Part shown: in pieces, positions 6,597 through 15,405 of the stretch
Numbering within the stretch: the stretch's first letter is position 1
Layout: the number at the start of each line of letters is the position of its first letter
Assembly: GCA_020184695.1 (NCBI GenBank)
Contig: JAANOX010000004.1
Coordinates: forward strand, 316,627-380,626
Origin: Histomonas meleagridis 2922-C6/04-290x
Taxonomy: Eukaryota > Protista > Parabasalia
DNA length: 64,000 nucleotides
Reading direction: 5' to 3'
Program-made: the position numbers and the translations under genes
The notes under the pieces: model-generated
Told to the model about the DNA's origin: nothing
Databases searched by the model: none
The model's input: the letters and a program-made list of their open reading frames with translations, nothing else

Positions 6597-7202
6597 TTAA
6601 TATGTTTCACATTTGGATTTTTTCGTTTTCTTTTTCGTTTCCTTTTGATCCTTTTGTAATAAAATATGTGCAATTCCTTCAAAGAGTTCTTTAATGTTCT
6701 TATATTCTCGATATGATACTTCTAACACTGGACATCCAAGTTCTTTACCAAGTGCTTGACCAACTTCAATCGGAACTGAATCGGGAGTTCGTCGTTCACA
6801 ATTGTTTGCTGCAATAATGCATGGAATCGTGACAACTCCTTTAGCTTGAAGTGCAGTTTTATATAAATCTTTTACACTTTCAACAGAGGTTGGATCTAAA
6901 ATTGAATAAACAAAAATAAATCCATTAACAATTTTCATTTCCCTATTCCTTGATTCCATAAAACCATCTTGTCCAGCTGTATCCAATATTTCAATAGTGA
7001 CTGATTTCCCATCAACTTTGATAGTTTTTGTGAATTCATCTTCTATTGTCAGCATATAAAGTGGTTCATATTGTTCTATAATATATGCTTTTGTGATTTC
7101 AGTCTTATCAGAGCCACCTCCGCCAAAAACACCAATCTTATAATAATATTTTTCTTCTGATTGCGTTTCATTTCCAGGTTTCTCATCTTGTTTTTGACTC
7201 AT
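6597..7202 (-). CDS. Ras/Rap-family small GTPase with degenerate nucleotide-binding motifs
   Basis: YKIGVFGGGGSDKT (G1), TIEDEF (G2), ILDTAGQD (G3), NNCE (G4), VSYR (G5), polybasic tail ending KKSKCETY. Likely start MSQKQ at 7202. Confidence 0.85.
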   Translation of the reverse strand: MSQKQDEKPGNETQSEEKYYYKIGVFGGGGSDKTEITKAYIIEQYEPLYMLTIEDEFTKTIKVDGKSVTIEILDTAGQDGFMESRNREMKIVNGFIFVYSILDPTSVESVKDLYKTALQAKGVVTIPCIIAANNCERRTPDSVPIEVGQALGKELGCPVLEVSYREYKNIKELFEGIAHILLQKDQKETKKKTKKSKCETY

Positions 7203-7431
7203 TTGGAAAGATAATAATTTTGTGATATCAACATATTGAAAACTTTTCAAAGAAAATTCAAAGAAATAATAGAATGAAGTGGGCAGAAAAACATTTAAAT
7301 ACTTATCTTTATTACTGCATTTAACTTCATAATATATCGAAATATTAAATTTTTTGTTGTGACAAATGATTAAACAAAAAAAAATATATTTCAATACTTC
7401 TATTTATTAATTTATATTTTACATTTCATGT

Positions 7432-8212
7432 TCATAATAATACTGGTGGTGTCGATGCTCCATATAATTTGTTTTCAACGTCCATGTTTTGAATATTTTT
7501 ATGGAAAACTTGCGTTTGTAATTCAATAAATACTTTGTACGTCACAAATGAGTCTGAGCCTGCTTGATGTTCTTTGCCAACACGTTCAACTGAATATTGA
7601 TCCGCAATGCCTTGTAAACCATTCGCAATATTAGGAAAACATGACGTATAATATTTAATATCATAAAAATGTGGAAAGTAAATGTGAAGCATTTTGAAAA
7701 AACTTTGGTTGTCGCTCGGGAGTGGTGAACTTGTAAGTGCTTTAAGAAGATATCCAAAATCTGAAATACTATGAAATGTAATCCACGTGATTTCATTGTT
7801 CATAACAAGACCACTCGTAAGAACAAAACGTCCAAAATCATAAACCAATACCTTCTTCATTAAATTTGGAAAAAAATCAATACCTGATTGTTGTAATAAT
7901 GTAATGGCACGTCCAAAAATGTGGATCTTTTTCAATATTAAATTTAAAGTTAAATTGCCACGTACAAACTGGACTTGGAACTTCTCCTTTAGAATTACCT
8001 AACGTGATCCCAATTTGAATGATTTTTAAGATATCAACATTACATCGCATTGATTGATACTCAAGTTCTTCGGTAGATTTAAAACAACCTGATGGTTTAG
8101 CTACAACACCTGGAAATTCGGTATCCATCCCACTAAATGGATAATCTTGAATTAAATCACTGATAATTTTCATTTCTTCTTCTAAATTATTTGCCCATAC
8201 TTCTCGAATCAT
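7432..8212 (-). pseudogene. CAF1: CAF1/POP2 (CNOT7/8) deadenylase copy 1, frameshifted (pseudogene or consensus errors)
   Basis: MIREVWANNLEEEM..MDTEFPG..LEYQSMRCNVDILKIIQIG..SDFGYLLK..HQAGSDS (DEDDh). Split over ORFs 7877..8251 and 7432..7935 by small indels relative to copy 2. Confidence 0.85.
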
Positions 8213-8563
8213 TTTTTTGTGTAAATAAAAGTGGAGGACGTTAAAATTCAACTCAAAGCAGTTCTTTTGTTTACCCCGATAAATTCTTAAAAGAATACTA
8301 TTAATTATCTAAGAAAAATTTTATTTGTTAATTTAAAGATAATTTTTTCAGATTTACTCAGCAAATTTATAAAATTAGTTCATATATTTATTATCTTAAA
8401 ATTATTAATTAATTATCAGCTGCCAATTTTTATTAATATGAAAGCAAATAAAAAATAAATTTAAATGTAATGTTGACATTTCGAAATGATGAATATTTAG
8501 ACAATTATATTTTAGAAAATAATTTTGATTATGTAGGATAATAATTAATTTTAGATAATGAAA

Positions 8564-8635
8564 GGGTGATTGGTCTAGTGGAATGATTCTCGCTTTGGGT
8601 GCGAGAGGTCTCGGGTTCGATTCCCGAATCGCCCC
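8564..8635 (+). tRNA. tRNA-Pro(UGG)
   Basis: GGGTGAT/ATCGCCC acceptor stem, TGGTCTAGTGG D arm, CTCGC-TT-TGG-GT-GCGAG anticodon arm, GGTTCGATTCC T loop, followed by a T-run terminator; 72 nt. Confidence 0.97.
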
Positions 8636-8670
8636 TAAATTTTTGTCACCTTCACCCAAAGGAAGTTCAA

Positions 8671-9941
8671 ATGGACATTCAGAAACAATGAAAGAACAAA
8701 AATCGTAAAAGATCAAAAACTTATTCCAATGTATTAAACTACACGGTGTTGCTACCAATAGCTCTAGCAGATCAAAAAGATTCTTTAAGAATCTCTTAAG
8801 AAGATTTATCATGATCACAAACATCTCAGGAATCCGAATTTAACCAATTTTGTTTTCATTTTCCATATATGGATTTTTCCAATATTCCATTTCTCACATA
8901 GATTAAGATTGGGTCAGATTGCTTTTTGGGTGTTTTTCATGTGCACTTTACTCCAGTGTTAAAAAGCCCAATTTTTCCACTCCGGAGAACATCCAGTTTT
9001 TTATTTCTTTGTTTCAAAGCAATAATTCTTCGTTGATATCGTCTTCTCTTTCTGTATTATACAATATTTGTGCTATCAATGAAGGAAGCCGCAAAAGAAA
9101 TCCCATTTATTATCTTATTGACAATGGAATAATATCAATTCTCAAAACTCTTCCACAATCTGTTCAAATGATACAATTCATTGAACTCTTAAGCACCATC
9201 CAAAGTCCATTTATACCCGATTTATGTTTACTCATCATTAATTATTTGAATTCTGATGATGTTGAATTTCTTTATCACGCAATGATTGCTGTTTATAACA
9301 TCTTCAAAACATGCGTCACGAATGTGAAAGAAATCAAAGAAATATTTTGGCCAATTTTTACGAATAATATTATACGTTATTTTTACGTTAAAAAAAACAG
9401 ATTTTATATTAAATTCTTTCGAGCATTAAATTGTTTTGATGGACTTCCTTATGAATATGGATCAACAATTCTTGAAATCATTTTTGCTTCTAAACCAAAA
9501 CGTAACACTAAAAGAGATAAATTGGTTGGCGTCGCAATGTCATTATTTTTATTTAATAATGAAAATTGGGCACCATTTTTATCCGAAAAATTTGTTTTTA
9601 CTTTCTTTGCTCCGAATGAAAAGAAATCGATATACGAAAAATCGTCGTTTAAAGTACAAAATTTTATCATTGAGGGTTTGGTTCATTATTTTAAGTTTGA
9701 GGATGGTAAAGATGTGTGTTATGGTATAGTCGGCGTGCTAATAGATGCTTTAGAACGTGATGGATTAGAATTACTTTGTTTAAGTAAATTGATTTCGATT
9801 TTGGTAATGAATGAGAAAAACACAATTTTGCTGAATTTGTTCACAGAAAAAATTCAAATTTTTAATGATTTATGTTTAAGTGAAAATGATAAAATACAAG
9901 AAATGGCTTTAAAAATAATAGAATGGATTGAACAAAGTTAA
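8671..9941 (+). CDS. ARM/HEAT-like helical protein (about 420 aa); 5' part frameshifted in this copy
   Basis: The intact N-terminus [10 protein letters not shown]...LLSTIQSP is read from the inverted copy (13518-12979). This copy has indels in 8680-8915 and is then open over 8919..9941. Leu/Ile-rich helical repeats; stop in TAAA. Confidence 0.6.
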
Positions 9942-10459: not shown

Positions 10460-10642
10460 TAATACATTGGAATAAGTTTTTGATCTTTTTACGATTTTTG
10501 TTCTTTCATTGTTTCGAATGTCCATTTAAACTTCCTTTGGGTGAAGGTGAAAAAAACAAAAATTTAGGGGCGATTCGGGAATCGAACCCGAGACCTCTCG
10601 CACCCAAAGCGAGAATCATTCCACTAGACCAATCACCCTTTC
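10460..10642. repeat. About 180-bp duplicated tRNA-Pro plus ARM-gene 5' fragment (direct copy of about 13453-13635)
   Basis: 'aatacattggaataagtttttgatc...ggtgaaaaaaacaaaaatttagggg...aatcaccctttc' is near-identical to 13453-13635, and the flanks are unrelated. Confidence 0.9.
10567..10638 (-). tRNA. tRNA-Pro(UGG), additional copy
   Basis: Reverse complement identical to 8564-8635. Confidence 0.97.
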
Positions 10643-10750
10643 GTTATTTGAAAAAATACATTATTTTTTATTATAATAATTTTTATCATCTGTTTTTTTG
10701 GTTATTTTTCATATTATTATTTAACATTTGTCTATCAATCTTTTGAAAAT

Positions 10751-12882
10751 ATGGAATTAAAACATGTTGCCAAGAATCAATGTATAGAGAATAAACAAAT
10801 AAATGATGATATTATAAATTTGATCAAACTAAAAAAAATTATTTTCGATTTAACAAATGAAAATTTTGATACATCAGTTAGACAAACATTAAAACTATTG
10901 GATTTAAATTTTCCAAATTCTATTAATTTTATCATTGCTAATTTAATTTATTATGCGTTTTATTCACAAAAGAAAGATGTTTATCTTTATTTAAATTATT
11001 TAAAAACAATTCAAATCAAAGAAGAAGAAATAAATAGTAATAATAAAATTACGTTAAAGATAGTTGAAATTTTTATTAATAAATTACAAATTGGATCACA
11101 GGAGTCATATTATTTTATTGACAAAATGATTAAATTAAAACTGATAAGCGAAGATATTGTTAATAGTATTCAATCTAATTATTTTATACATTATCAAACA
11201 AAAGAAAATAAAAAGATTAAATATAATGCATTTGAAAATAACATTGAAAAAAAATTCAGAGAAAATTATTTAGAATTATCAAAGAATAATTGGGAACTTC
11301 ATAAAAAATTAATTGAAGAAGGAGTAAATCCAAATAAAATTGCAAAAATAATTCGAAATGATGAAATAGAAAAACTTCAAGAAATATCATCACAAACAAA
11401 CTTTGATTATAACCAAACAATTGAACCATCATTTTATGAAAGATGTTCATTCATTAATAAAGAAAATGTTTCATTAATTGATTATGCAGCATTTTTTGGA
11501 TCAGTTAAATGTTTTAAATATTTACTTACGAATGGTGCAAATGTAAAAAACACAGGCAAATATGCTGTTGCAAGTGGAAATCTTGAAATTATTCATTTAT
11601 GCGAACAAAATCATTCATCATTTGTAGATGCATATGAAACAGCAATTGAATTTCATCGAAATGATATTTTTTATTATCTTTATGAAAATAAATATCAAAA
11701 TATATATAAACATAGTCAAAAGTCACCTCCAAGATCAGAAGATATTAATCCACTTTTCTTTATAGATTGTGGCACTGAAACATTAACAGAATCTGAAAAA
11801 AGGCAAAAGAGCATTACTAATTTTGTATACTTTTGTATTATGAGTGGGAATTTTGAAATTTTATTATTTTTAGAGAAAGAAGGAATGAATATCTTATTAA
11901 TATAGCAGCAAAAATTGGTAATTTATATCTTGTCAAATATTTTCTTCAAAATTATCAAATTTCAAATAAAGTTTTGGTTTTTTCATCTGAATCAGGAAAT
12001 ATCGAACTTGTGAAATATATTCTTGAGCAAGAAGGAACAAATATTAATGAAAAAGATATTTGTTTTTAAGAAATTATGTCTATATTAATAATTTATTATA
12101 TTAAAATAATATTTGGAAAATGCTAAAAATATTTAAAACAGCACTTATAAAGGCATCAGAAAATGGATATATAGAAATAGTGGAATTACTTCTTAAACAA
12201 AAGGGAATTGATATTAATGCTCATGATATTAATATTTTATAATAATATTCAAAAATTATTCAATTAATTTAATACCGCACTTAAGTCAGCAGTTGAAAAT
12301 GGTCACATAGAAATAGTTAAATTACTTCTTGGGCAAAATGAAATTGATGTTAATACAAAAAATATGTATTTATCTTATTCAAAATATATTTTATTAATTT
12401 TATATTTCAAAATGATATTTGGAAACTATTTAAAATATTTAATACTTTACTCATTGAAGCAGCTAAAAAAGGGAACATAGAAATATCAAAATTACTTCTT
12501 ACACAAGGAAAAATTGATATAAATGCCAAAAATATTTAATTGTTTTATTTCAAATCTATTTGAATAATTTCTTGTTTCAAAGAAATAAATGGGAAATATT
12601 TGAATTGTTTTGGACAGCACTTATGTATGCAAGTGAAAAAGGTCATACAGAATTAGTTAAATTTCTTCTTGAACAAGAAGGAATCAATATTAATGCTAAA
12701 AATTTATATATTTTATATTTAATATTTGTCTTGATAATTTGATATTTTAAAATATTATATGGAAATAATTTAAAATATTTGAAACAGCACTCATAATTGC
12801 ATTTAAGAATGCTCAGGCACAAATAATTAAATTAATTCATGACTTCATCCAAAAGTCAAAAGATATAGATGATATCATCTAA
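10751..12882 (+). CDS. Parabasalid DUF3447-type ankyrin repeat protein with interrupted C-terminal repeats
   Basis: The N-terminal ORF 10751..11905 has SLIDYAAFFGSVKCFKYLL, YAVASGNLEIIHLCEQ and AIEFHRNDIFYYL. A frameshift near 11885 leads to LINIAAKIGNLYLVKY..GNIELVKYILEQEGTNINEKDI. This is followed by five ankyrin segments (12132-12230, 12268-12366, 12438-12536, 12608-12706, 12778-12882) separated by AT-rich inserts. The last segment ends in TAAA. Confidence 0.8.
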
Positions 12883-12927
12883 AAATATTTTTTCGAATGT
12901 ATTTTTTTTTTAAATGATTTGTCTAGA

Positions 12928-13518
12928 CTATTCTCCCACGTAACAAACTTTAAAATACCAAAAAACGTTTTTTGTTTGTGGACTTTGGATGGTGCTTAAG
13001 AGTTCAATGAATTGTATCATTTGAACAGATTGTGGAAGAGTTTTGAGAATTGATATTATTCCATTGTCAATAAGATAATAAATGGGATTTCTTTTGCGGC
13101 TTCCTTCATTGATAGCACAAATATTGTATAATACAGAAAGAGAAGACGATATCAACGAAGAATTATTGCTTTGAAACAAAGAAATAAAAAACTGGATGTT
13201 CTCCGGAGTGGAAAAATTGGGCTTTTTAACACTGGAGTAAAGTGCACATGAAAAACACCCAAAAGCAATTTGACCCAATTCTGAATTTATGTGAGAAATG
13301 GAATATTGGAAAAAATCCATATATGGAAAATGAAAACAAAATTGGTTAAATTCGGATTCCTGAGATGTTTGTAAATAATGATAAATTCTCTTAAGAGATT
13401 CTAAAGAATCTTTTTGATCTGCTAGAGCTATTGGTAGCAACACTGTGTAGTTTAATACATTGGAATAAGTTTTTGATCTTTTTACGATTTTTGTTCTTTC
13501 ATTGTTTCGAATGTCCAT
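12928..13518 (-). pseudogene. Truncated inverted copy of the ARM-like gene (N-terminal 180 aa plus 16 aa novel tail)
   Basis: ORF 12928..13596 from Met at 13518 matches 8671-9209, then reads non-homologous sequence (QTKNVFWYFKVCYVGE*) past the duplication breakpoint at 12979. Confidence 0.8.
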
Positions 13519-13559
13519 TTGAACTTCCTTTGGGTGAAGGTGAAAAAAACAAAAATTTA

Positions 13560-13631
13560 GGGGCGATTCGGGAATCGAACCCGAGACCTCTCGCACCCAA
13601 AGCGAGAATCATTCCACTAGACCAATCACCC
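13560..13631 (-). tRNA. tRNA-Pro(UGG), copy in right arm
   Basis: Reverse complement identical to 8564-8635. Confidence 0.97.
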
Positions 13632-13983
13632 TTTCATTATCTAAAATTAATTATTATCCTACATAATCAAAATTATTTTCTAAAATATAATTGTCTAAAT
13701 ATTCATCATTTCGAAAATGTCAACATTACATTTAAATTTATTTTTTATTTGCTTTCATATTAATAAAAATTGACAGCTGATAATTAATTAATAATTTTAA
13801 GATAATAAATATATGAACTAATTTTATAAATTTGCTGAGTAAATCTGAAAAAATTATCTTTAAATTAACAAATAAAATTTTTCTTAGATAATTAATAGTA
13901 TTCTTTTAAGAATTTATCGGGGTAAACAAAAGAACTGCTTTGAGTTGAATTTTAACGTCCTCCACTTTTATTTACACAAAAAA

Positions 13984-14769
13984 ATGATTCGAGAAGTATG
14001 GGCAAATAATTTAGAAGAAGAAATGAAAATTATCAGTGATTTAATTCAAGATTATCCATTTATTGGGATGGATACCGAATTTCCAGGTGTTGTAGCTAAA
14101 CCATCAGGTTGTTTTAAATCTACCGAAGAACTTGAGTATCAATCAATGCGATGTAATGTTGATATCTTAAAAATCATTCAAATTGGGATCACGTTAGGTA
14201 ATTCTAAAGGAGAAGTTCCAAGTCCAGTTTGTACGTGGCAATTTAACTTTAAATTTAATATTGAAAAAGATCCACATTTTGGACGTGCCATTACATTATT
14301 ACAACAATCAGGTATTGATTTTTCCAAATTTAATGAAGAAGGTATTGATGTTTATGATTTTGGACGTTTTGTTCTTACGAGTGGTCTTGTTATGAACAAT
14401 GAAATCACGTGGATTACATTTCATAGTATTTCAGATTTTGGATATCTTCTTAAAGCACTTACAAGTTCACCACTCCCGAGCGACAACCAAAGTTTTTTCA
14501 AAATGCTTCACATTTACTTTCCACATTTTTTTATGATATTAAATATTATACGTCATGTTTTTCCCTAATATTGCGAATGGTTTACAAGGTATTGCGGAGC
14601 AATATTCAGTTGAACGTGTTGGCAAAGAACATCAAGCAGGCTCAGACTCATTTGTGACGTACAAAGTATTTATTGAATTACAAACGCAAGTTTTACAAAA
14701 AAAAATATTCAAAACATGGACGTTGAAAACAAATTATATGGAGCATCGACACCACCAGTATTATTATGA
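13984..14769 (+). CDS. CAF1: CAF1/POP2 deadenylase copy 2, with 3' homopolymer frameshifts
   Basis: Open from ATG 13984 through MDTEFPG and SDFGYLLK. Frameshifts occur at T-runs near 14525-14545 and an A-run near 14700. The true end YGASTPPVLL* is inferred from copy 1. Confidence 0.85.
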
Positions 14770-14955
14770 ACATGAAATGTAAAATATAAATTAATAAATA
14801 GAAGTATTGAAATATATTTTTTTTTTTGTTTAATCATTTGTCACAACAAAAAATTTAATATTTCGATATATTATGAAGTTAAATGCAGTAATAAAGATAA
14901 GTATTTAAATGTTTTTCTGCCCGCTTTGATATTAAAAAATAAATCAAAAAAATTC

Positions 14956-15027
14956 TTCCGATACGGGGAGTCGAACCCCGCTCCCGTGGATGAAAACCAC
15001 ATATCCTAACCGATGAACGATATCGGA
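14956..15027 (-). tRNA. tRNA-Glu(UUC)
   Basis: Minus strand TCCGATA/TATCGGA acceptor stem, TGTGG-TT-TTC-AT-CCACG anticodon arm, GGTTCGACTCC T loop; 72 nt. Confidence 0.93.
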
Positions 15028-15405
15028 ATTTCGAATTTAGGAAATATTTTAAATATAAAAACTTATCAAATACTATTTAAACAGAAGATTCAAAATTGCT
15101 TCATAAGTTTTTCCATATTAATTGTTGAATCAGCTCAAGTTATTTCACACGAAAGTGTACATCTACCAACGAAATGCAATCGAACAAAAATTTTTGTTTG
15201 AATTGAACCATTTGGAAATGGTGTTGAGACATAACAAAAGAGCTTGAAATTGTCTTTGATGTTTGGCTGGATACATGTGAATCATTTTAGCTTCTAGAGA
15301 AATGAATATAGCAAAAGGGGGTTGTGCGTGGTTTCATGTCCAAAATTTTATTTCCCCATACTAAAATGACCGTTTAAAAATCCTTATTGGTTGGAAATTT
15401 AAAAC

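Follow-up and report, generated by a model that had tools for sequence, protein, structure and literature searches.

The 64,000-nucleotide (nt) stretch analyzed here (the window; positions 316,627 to 380,626 of contig JAANOX010000004.1, assembly GCA_020184695.1) comes from Histomonas meleagridis, a trichomonad relative and parasite of poultry. It has a GC content of 23 to 36%, is gene dense, and carries long uninterrupted open reading frames (ORFs); four of the encoded proteins match NCBI entries exactly. Within it, a DUF3447/ankyrin gene spans positions 10751 to 12882, and the last five of its 33-codon repeats are split by four spacers of 71 nt and one of 37 nt (Table 1). These spacers are noncoding and have exact boundaries, the exons flanking them are under protein-level constraint in shifting reading frames, and spacer length is kept while spacer sequence drifts. 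The same design is present in at least three parabasalid lineages.

An earlier, sequence-only reading of this DNA had proposed exon and insert coordinates and lengths that all hold on rereading of the sequence, with boundaries identical to those recovered from the stop-codon maps described below. The four 71-nt spacers align without gaps, and the motifs TAATTT (spacer positions 29 to 34) and TGG(A/G)AA (positions 54 to 59) noted in that reading are found in 4/4. It had also stated that every insert shifts the frame and leads to a stop; this is generally the case, except that the spacer at 12367 to 12437 is open in the upstream frame, where a stop is reached 38 codons on, inside the next exon. 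The 37-nt spacer aligns as a 71-nt spacer with an internal deletion of 34 nt (alignment columns 29 to 62).

In Pfam searches, the N-terminal ORF matched DUF3447 (PF11929; E value, 3.2e-7; 30.6 bits versus a cutoff of 26.9) and Ank_4 above its cutoff, with weaker, subthreshold matches to other Ank models. All four internal exons matched Ank (PF00023) over positions 3 to 32 of 33 (E values, 1e-9 to 4e-6; 27 to 38 bits versus a cutoff of 21.1), and direct joining of the exons would therefore restore the 33-residue period. Five stop-free 33-codon frames would occur by chance with a probability of ∼1e-7, by our own arithmetic and assuming ∼0.09 stops per random codon at the local GC content of 23 to 25%. 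The spacer core occurs three times in the window, each time within the ankyrin gene, compared with 0.13 expected occurrences. The region from 10701 to 12950 is identical in both sequenced strains (GCA_020186115.1, contig WSYJ01000151.1, and the attenuated GCA_020184695.1). The gene is missing from the NCBI annotation; the public H. meleagridis annotation is ab initio and was made with AUGUSTUS (PMC8529796).

Table 1. Layout of the DUF3447/ankyrin gene (positions are those of the window)
Feature	Positions	Strand	Remarks
N-terminal ORF, 384 amino acids	10751..11905	+	Family-specific N-terminal region, DUF3447, first ankyrin-like repeats; ends in TAG
Frameshift between two ankyrin-like repeats	11884..11892	+	Three-frame reading; not a spacer
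Second-frame coding segment	11890..12060	+	57 codons, two ankyrin-like repeats, ending ...NINEKDI; Ank 2e-5, Ank_2 1.4e-5
Spacer 1, 71 nt	12061..12131	+	Stops in the upstream frame (TAA as third codon) and in the downstream frame
Ankyrin exon, 33 codons	12132..12230	+	Ank 6e-7, profile positions 4 to 32
Spacer 2, 37 nt	12231..12267	+	No G at all; conserved TGG lost
Ankyrin exon, 33 codons	12268..12366	+	Ank 1.2e-6
Spacer 3, 71 nt	12367..12437	+	Ungapped alignment with the other 71-nt copies
Ankyrin exon, 33 codons	12438..12536	+	Ank 4.4e-6
Spacer 4, 71 nt	12537..12607	+	TAA directly after the exon
Ankyrin exon, 33 codons	12608..12706	+	Ank 1.1e-9
Spacer 5, 71 nt	12707..12777	+	Ungapped alignment with the other 71-nt copies
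Terminal cap-like repeat, 34 codons, and TAA stop (12880 to 12882)	12778..12882	+	Like the terminal exons with their own stops in L093 and L004

A protein search with the N-terminal ORF identified 33 homologues, mostly from gut metagenomes and sharing 41 to 54% identity, with paralogues from H. meleagridis and Tritrichomonas foetus included; their contigs appear to be metagenomic or genomic DNA. Nearly all of these proteins end where the first spacer would begin or run only a few, hydrophobic residues further, and none of the 33 reads across a spacer except the one at locus L002. There, a 57-nt, in-frame, and stop-free version of the spacer (L002:1921-1977) is read through by the gene caller (protein P0017), and thus spacer length can change and restore the frame. 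The 170-nt unit (99 + 71) recurs in L001, L004/L005, L007, and L093 and in a paralogue from H. meleagridis (L008). Locus L093 carries a complete gene, in which an N terminus is followed by eight ankyrin exons free of stops and by a distinct C-terminal tail with its own stop, after which the next gene begins. Of the seven spacers in this gene, six measure 71 nt, and the other, of 72 nt, is in frame and contains TAA. Repeat spacings other than 170 nt (167, 173, and 182 nt) differ by whole codons, the spacer being fixed at 71 nt. Terminal cap-like exons with their own stops were found in three genes, namely, those of the window, L093, and L004. Transposase sequences were also seen at some of these loci. 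The paralogue at L008 is interrupted by a mariner/Tc1-like element (L008:5208-6487), which has terminal inverted repeats rich in G and a transposase ORF that is degenerate; the annotated protein P0013 runs into this element. An IS1595-type DDE transposase ORF lies 2.5 kb 3′ of the ankyrin gene on the parabasalid-like metagenome contig of L004 and L005 (L004:4380-5279 and L005:4622-5521).

Stop codons were mapped across 23 Histomonas-type junctions pooled from at least five genes. The upstream frame had one stop across the 12 codon positions before the spacer and the downstream frame had none from the spacer end, and within the 71-nt spacers stops occurred in all three frames (4%, 6%, and 10% per codon). 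Between repeats, the exons gave a ratio of nonsynonymous to synonymous differences (pN/pS) of 0.59, with 1508/829/1753 differences by codon position; all pN/pS values in this study are uncorrected and compare paralogous repeats. The spacers differed by 0.485 per site, with a few conserved columns, notably TTGGAAT at spacer positions 52 to 58. A spacer-coded peptide in the downstream frame (..FQNNIWK.FKIF..) was apparent in the first copies and was rejected: the 23 copies give about one stop per spacer, often TAA for CAA, and the residues are what T-rich DNA yields in any frame. The idea that the spacer derives from an ankyrin repeat that has partly decayed was likewise rejected, as the similarity seen by eye was not beyond that expected of AT-rich DNA.

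A second, shorter class of spacer was found when Joint Genome Institute (JGI) metagenomes were scanned with an alignment of the family, which identified 80 loci from one organism (contigs Ga0209639_* and Ga0074193_*). This organism carries PFOR, PPDK, and long intron-less ORFs, and its transketolase shares 66% identity with that of Trichomonas vaginalis, 65% with that of H. meleagridis, and 57 to 58% with those of Tritrichomonas, identities that place it among the parabasalids. Spacers were present in most of its ∼70 repeat-array loci. Sorted by repeat spacing, there were 234 to 236 distinct junctions at 116 nt (99 + 17), 132 to 136 at 99 nt, and 22 at 105 nt. Spacings of 115, 117, and 118 nt (spacers of 16, 18, and 19 nt) were represented by 1, 2, and 5 junctions, respectively, and spacings of 113, 119, and 122 nt (spacers of 14, 20, and 23 nt) by none in this set. 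The five 19-nt spacers lie inside otherwise regular arrays (L026, L030, L052, and L056), and three of them are the consensus plus two bases.

Across 236 junctions of the 17-nt class, counting from the T codon of TPLH, the upstream frame is stop free to −24 and the downstream frame is stop free from −6, with stops between these points in both. The residue preferences flanking the spacer are those of uninterrupted junctions, position by position, and where interrupted and uninterrupted junctions with ∼95% identical 120-nt flanks were compared, the difference was exactly the 17 nt. Of 42 repeats that the search pattern had missed, and that were therefore unselected for intactness, 41 were stop free. 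Because all three JGI datasets represent a single genome (100% identity), selection was estimated from paralogous repeat pairs rather than from orthologous strain pairs. Exon pN/pS was 0.57 to 0.79 in the three more divergent bins and 1.59 among the 31 most similar pairs, and the spacer sequence diverged at least as fast as synonymous sites. Taken together, the stop-free exons, the pN/pS bins, and the spacer divergence indicate that the spacers are free to vary in sequence but not in length and that the exons are constrained. A comparison of exon selection with insert conservation had been suggested in the sequence-only reading, and its outcome is that exons evolve as coding sequence (pN/pS below 1 except in the most similar pairs) and spacers drift.

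When translation is continued from an exon through a 17-nt spacer and on into the following repeat in the wrong frame (L054:2900-5000 and other JGI loci), a hydrophobic stretch of ∼22 residues is read before a stop; if the spacers were retained, the product at these loci would end in a segment resembling a tail anchor. Homology between the last 17 nt of the 71-nt spacer (from the conserved TGG) and the 17-nt spacer was considered and found unconvincing, with ∼9 to 10 of 17 consensus matches in AT-rich sequence.

A third lineage is represented by T. foetus, in which the annotated product of TRFO_20532 (P0023) ends (...NITNIEIFFPG) at the first spacer. The DNA past its stop (L096:4966-5680, MLAK01000617.1) contains a further four ankyrin exons, all of them intact, and the final one closes with a stop of its own. 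From boundaries placed by eye in this one gene, the reading frames run 1, 2, 1, 2, 1 and the spacers measure ∼19, 50, 49, and 190 nt. The public model of TRFO_20532 is probably truncated. At the T. vaginalis locus of the relative P0033 (L091), the ankyrin gene is ordinary and has no interruptions.

The spacers must be absent from the mature product, because the exons are selected in rotating frames, because removal restores the 33-residue period and the loop residues exactly, because each array ends in its own cap exon, and because spacer-free genomic copies exist at the same boundaries. The original proposal that the inserts do not code and have to be skipped is thus borne out by a like architecture in several genes and species, by spacer presence and absence, and by coding-type evolution of the exons. 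How this is achieved can be read in several ways. The one we favor, tentatively and with slightly less than even confidence, is that the spacers are intron-like intervening sequences that may be cut from the RNA by a noncanonical route; removal at the RNA level and the machinery responsible are what we infer from the genomic pattern. Under this proposal, the 71-nt segments would be members of an old, lineage-wide class in parabasalid DUF3447/ankyrin genes, placed in phase 0 within the codons for the hairpin loop that links one ankyrin repeat to the next. Their excision from the transcript would join the 33-codon exons so that the protein forms a regular, C-terminally capped ankyrin solenoid. 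Such a route would use neither GT-AG ends nor the trichomonad branch/3′ motif, and position and length would matter more to it than sequence.

Known eukaryotic nuclear intervening sequences fall into a few classes (such as spliceosomal, tRNA type, and IRE1 type), each with defined signals, and the spacers fail every class signal tested. In agreement with the sequence-only reading, which had reported GT/AG ends and the trichomonad 3′ motif as missing, GT stands at no fixed position in the 71-nt class and the 37-nt copy has no G. Using the trichomonad intron motifs of PMC12316389, no match to the extended 5′ motif (GYAYGY or GTWYWD) with the fused branch/3′ motif (RCTAACACAYAG or TCTAAC..AACAG) was identified in the window, even with one mismatch allowed, and these motifs are missing from the spacer consensus as well. 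That reading had left room for true GT-AG junctions at shifted positions; a dinucleotide scan of the 236 junctions at all offsets, for shifted GT-AG or AT-AC borders, gave none above ∼65%. For U12-type AT-AC introns, AT was found at the 5′ edge of 45/236 spacers, with TT or AT at the 3′ edge. Structures of the tRNA or IRE1 type were not predicted, the RNAalifold consensus being empty and the mean minimum-free-energy z scores being −0.04 and −0.08. Group I or II self-splicing introns are not indicated by the size of 17 to 71 nt, the lack of structure, or Rfam, which gave no family in the region. For pairing of the ends as in euglenid introns, neither 3-bp end complementarity above threshold nor covariation was found. 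Folding, a check suggested in the sequence-only reading, revealed no conserved structure, and the direct repeat or palindrome seen at the window junctions is not a general feature in comparisons of ends, covariation, and structure.

Some of these results, together with others, weigh against removal from the RNA. In the 17-nt class, G is the first base in 57% and GT the first dinucleotide in 39% (92/236), there is no AG column, and a GT..AG pair of suitable length is possible in 41/236 junctions. Validated trichomonad introns require GT/AG together with extended motifs, and none is shorter than 23 nt (PMC12316389; PMC13548475). No column pair showed covariation or excess pairing across the 236 ungapped junctions, and with neither conserved ends nor structure, a feature by which a processing enzyme could recognize the spacers is not evident. 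Every spacer examined lies at an ankyrin junction, with no systematic search of other genes made, and a general excision machinery might act elsewhere. In T. vaginalis, long reads represent mature mRNAs that run across several broken ORFs and are unspliced (10.64898/2026.08.31.748405); these include ankyrin genes and are read there as stop-codon readthrough (10.64898/2026.08.31.748405). Within H. meleagridis itself, the break in the window copy is not a spacer, and the second paralogue (P0013, L008, WSYJ01000186.1) is dead, with stops inside its exons. The latter shows what decay looks like in the DUF3447/ankyrin family: exon stops and indels are as frequent as in spacers in L008 but not in the family as a whole.

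The main rival, which we consider unlikely, is that truncated proteins are made. Translation would end a few codons into the first spacer, leaving a short hydrophobic tail, and the downstream repeats would be silent, kept intact by youth or gene conversion as a cassette archive or a decaying array, with the window locus as a pseudogene. This would account for gene callers and annotators stopping at the first spacer in every case, for the short, hydrophobic tails obtained on reading on, and for the frameshift of the window copy; the exon stops and transposon insertion of L008, a true pseudogene, also fit. Concerted evolution of adjacent repeats is evident, with the top mutual-information pairs one period apart, and pN/pS is high, at 1.59, for the most similar repeat pairs. 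However, the terminal cap exons are unique, so that no other repeat could serve to refresh them, and still they are intact with their own stops in three genes. Unexpressed DNA needs no fixed length, but the spacers measure exactly 17 or 71 nt although their sequence is nearly saturated. In 236 diverse junctions, the edges of the spacer coincide exactly with the limits of the stop-free zones, exon length changes by whole codons only, and the 41 of 42 repeats found without ascertainment by the pattern are intact. If the spacers are indeed not skipped, silent repeat arrays kept intact around spacers held to an exact nucleotide length would still be a puzzle.

Translational recoding, in which the spacers stay in the mRNA and are passed at each junction by a ribosomal shift (−1) or hop, as was once suggested for the split genes of T. 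vaginalis, appears improbable. Both main spacer lengths, 17 and 71 nt, are 2 mod 3, but the 19-nt and 37-nt spacers are 1 mod 3, the T. foetus gene needs both shift directions within one gene, so that a single direction does not suffice, and the 72-nt spacer of L093 is in frame and contains TAA. A stop-free path with a single −1 switch exists in 232/236 junctions, a count that barely discriminates from the 225 ± 3 obtained with shuffled spacers, and upstream-frame stops in the 17-nt spacer are at about half the shuffled expectation. The in-frame, open 57-nt version in L002 speaks for recoding, but variants of ±3 nt, which a translated spacer would tolerate, do not occur. The consensus has no in-frame slippery heptamer (X XXY YYZ). 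Takeoff and landing codons match no more often than by chance: in 14/236 junctions, the 3 nt that precede the spacer are identical to its own final 3 nt, and the best hop-codon pair was observed 80 times versus 63 expected. The 923 frameshift-split genes of T. vaginalis and its unspliced multi-ORF mRNAs offer a precedent, but here seven to seventeen successive events would be needed, each at near-100% efficiency, and the residues and spacing without the spacers fit the 33-residue ankyrin period exactly. The ribosomal bypassing or frameshifting raised in the sequence-only reading is accordingly disfavored.

Ordinary spliceosomal introns with shifted GT-AG ends, or a relaxed splice-site code specific to the lineage, seem more doubtful still. 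The young 17-nt consensus starts with GTTGAG, ATGT stands at spacer positions 16 to 19 in several metagenome 71-nt copies, a run of pyrimidines followed by CAG forms the end of one T. foetus spacer, and the narrow length distribution is like that of minimal introns in some other protists. Against this stand the low proportion of GT starts and of suitable GT..AG pairs and the lack of an AG column given above, a 37-nt spacer that contains no G, and the missing trichomonad 3′ motif in the window. Moreover, 17 nt is shorter than the trichomonad 5′ and 3′ motifs combined and falls below the 23-nt minimum, and shifted boundaries would delete codons whose residue preferences match those of uninterrupted repeats. 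Programmed DNA excision in some nuclei or life stages, like that of ciliate internal eliminated sequences, would suit the exact 17-nt presence or absence between near-identical junctions but is the least credible explanation, given ends that are not TA-TA and are inconsistent (mixed boundary dinucleotides, with TG or TA at the 5′ edge and TA or TG at the 3′ edge), no terminal repeats or end microhomology found in the 17-nt spacers, the presence of spacers in all bulk DNA assemblies, culture derived and metagenomic alike, and no germline/soma nuclear dimorphism known in parabasalids. Neither DNA excision nor RNA editing, both of which the sequence-only reading had listed, gained support.

The state of the window copy leaves the reading of the spacers unchanged and can be considered separately. 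The frameshift at ∼11885 that had been noted upstream is real in the assembly: because of it, the 384-codon ORF starting at 10751 ends in TAG at 11905, and the frame bearing the repeats opens at ∼11890. The region at 11884 to 11892 is ∼10 nt shorter than in paralogues by our own comparison with P0001 and P0005. Alongside this frameshift and the one truncated spacer, the exons of the copy carry no stops. The assembly is based on Oxford Nanopore Technologies (ONT) reads and polished with Illumina reads, and the break near 11885 lies outside any homopolymer. Since the assembly is ONT based and at least one homopolymer-associated frameshift lies nearby in the CAF1 gene, the break may be an assembly error. 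On the basis of the frameshift and the truncated spacer, we put the chance that the window copy has recently been inactivated at about even; the caveat that it is a pseudogene stands and is strengthened by the 37-nt spacer without the conserved TGG.

The ankyrin gene is flanked by an inverted duplication of ∼1.95 kb (arms at 7277 to 9209 and 12979 to 14926; larger blocks are 96 to 100% identical). A gene for the deadenylase CAF1 and one for tRNA-Pro(TGG) are located in the arms. The CAF1 gene (13945 to 14776; inverted copy at ∼6597 to 7935) is split by a frameshift in or beside a T run at ∼14527 to 14535, where indels distinguish one inverted copy from the other; either the break is genuine or ONT sequencing erred in the homopolymer, and the public annotation gives a product of 231 residues. 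A direct repeat of 228 nt is found at 10460 to 10687 and 13453 to 13680, and three identical tRNA-Pro(TGG) genes (8564 to 8635, 10567 to 10638, and 13560 to 13631) and one tRNA-Glu(TTC) gene (14955 to 15028) lie within 6.5 kb.

Should the spacers be removed or skipped, trichomonad-like parasites would have a step of gene expression that nobody has described. As a broader proposal, held with less confidence than the excision of the spacers itself, Parabasalia may possess an undescribed nonspliceosomal process of removal or skipping that is guided by position and length (17 nt in one lineage and 71 nt in that of Histomonas) and not by the sequence of splice sites, affects hundreds of ankyrin junctions in dozens of genes, and possibly accounts for part of the frameshift-split genes of T. 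vaginalis too. Literature searches revealed no description of such spacer elements. Trichomonad intron pipelines accept only junctions with canonical motifs (PMC12316389, PMC13548475), so such elements would go unreported. If the spacers are removed or skipped, the gene catalogues of Histomonas, Tritrichomonas, and their relatives truncate or omit genes with spacers, as with TRFO_20532 and the unannotated gene of the window. The genome paper of T. vaginalis counted 923 genes that frameshifts divide and suggested that a new mechanism of frameshifting might be at work (Carlton 2007, as quoted), and in the passages quoted, whether such genes are pseudogenes or are recoded is debated (Carlton 2007, as quoted; 10.64898/2026.08.31.748405). 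That question would become testable on a clean, repeated, and conserved substrate.

Among known systems, the spliceosomal introns of trichomonads, type A (56 to 196 nt) and type B (23 to 28 nt), occur in the same organisms and are likewise short, AT rich, and rare, some of them in ankyrin genes (PMC12316389). However, they have GT/AG ends, an extended 5′ motif, and a 12-nt branch/3′ motif, all three of which the spacers lack; the 17-nt class is also below the shortest validated intron, and there are many spacers per gene versus single introns in T. vaginalis. The split genes or 'RT genes' of T. vaginalis share with the spacer genes adjacent ORF pieces parted by stops or frameshifts, often in repeat families including ankyrin (Carlton 2007, as quoted; 10.64898/2026.08.31.748405). 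Their breaks, however, are mostly single and are read as stop-codon readthrough, whereas the spacers recur regularly, at a set position and with a set length, in more than one lineage and between exons under selection.

Further afield, minimal introns measure ∼15 to 16 nt in heterotrich ciliates and 18 to 21 nt in chlorarachniophyte nucleomorphs. They resemble the spacers in their narrow length range and little internal conservation, and a length that is not a multiple of three or an in-frame stop exposes their retention; they differ in being strictly GT-AG and occurring in all kinds of genes, whereas the spacers have degenerate ends and were seen at ankyrin junctions only. The nonconventional introns of euglenids also have non-GT-AG borders and an excision machinery that has not been identified, but they are reported to pair their ends into a stem and to vary in length, and the spacers have no end pairing and a fixed length. 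Bypass elements (phage T4 gene 60 and the 'byps' of Magnusiomyces mitochondria) are short noncoding inserts in ORFs that are kept in the mRNA and skipped and that can be many per genome; they need matched takeoff and landing codons and local structure, neither of which was found in the spacers, and the spacer genes are nuclear. Lastly, the one-exon-per-repeat genes of intron-rich eukaryotes have ordinary GT-AG introns of variable length, unlike the spacers, but show the same arrangement, in which the interruption recurs at the same phase and position in each repeat and has spread by tandem duplication of an exon together with its intron.

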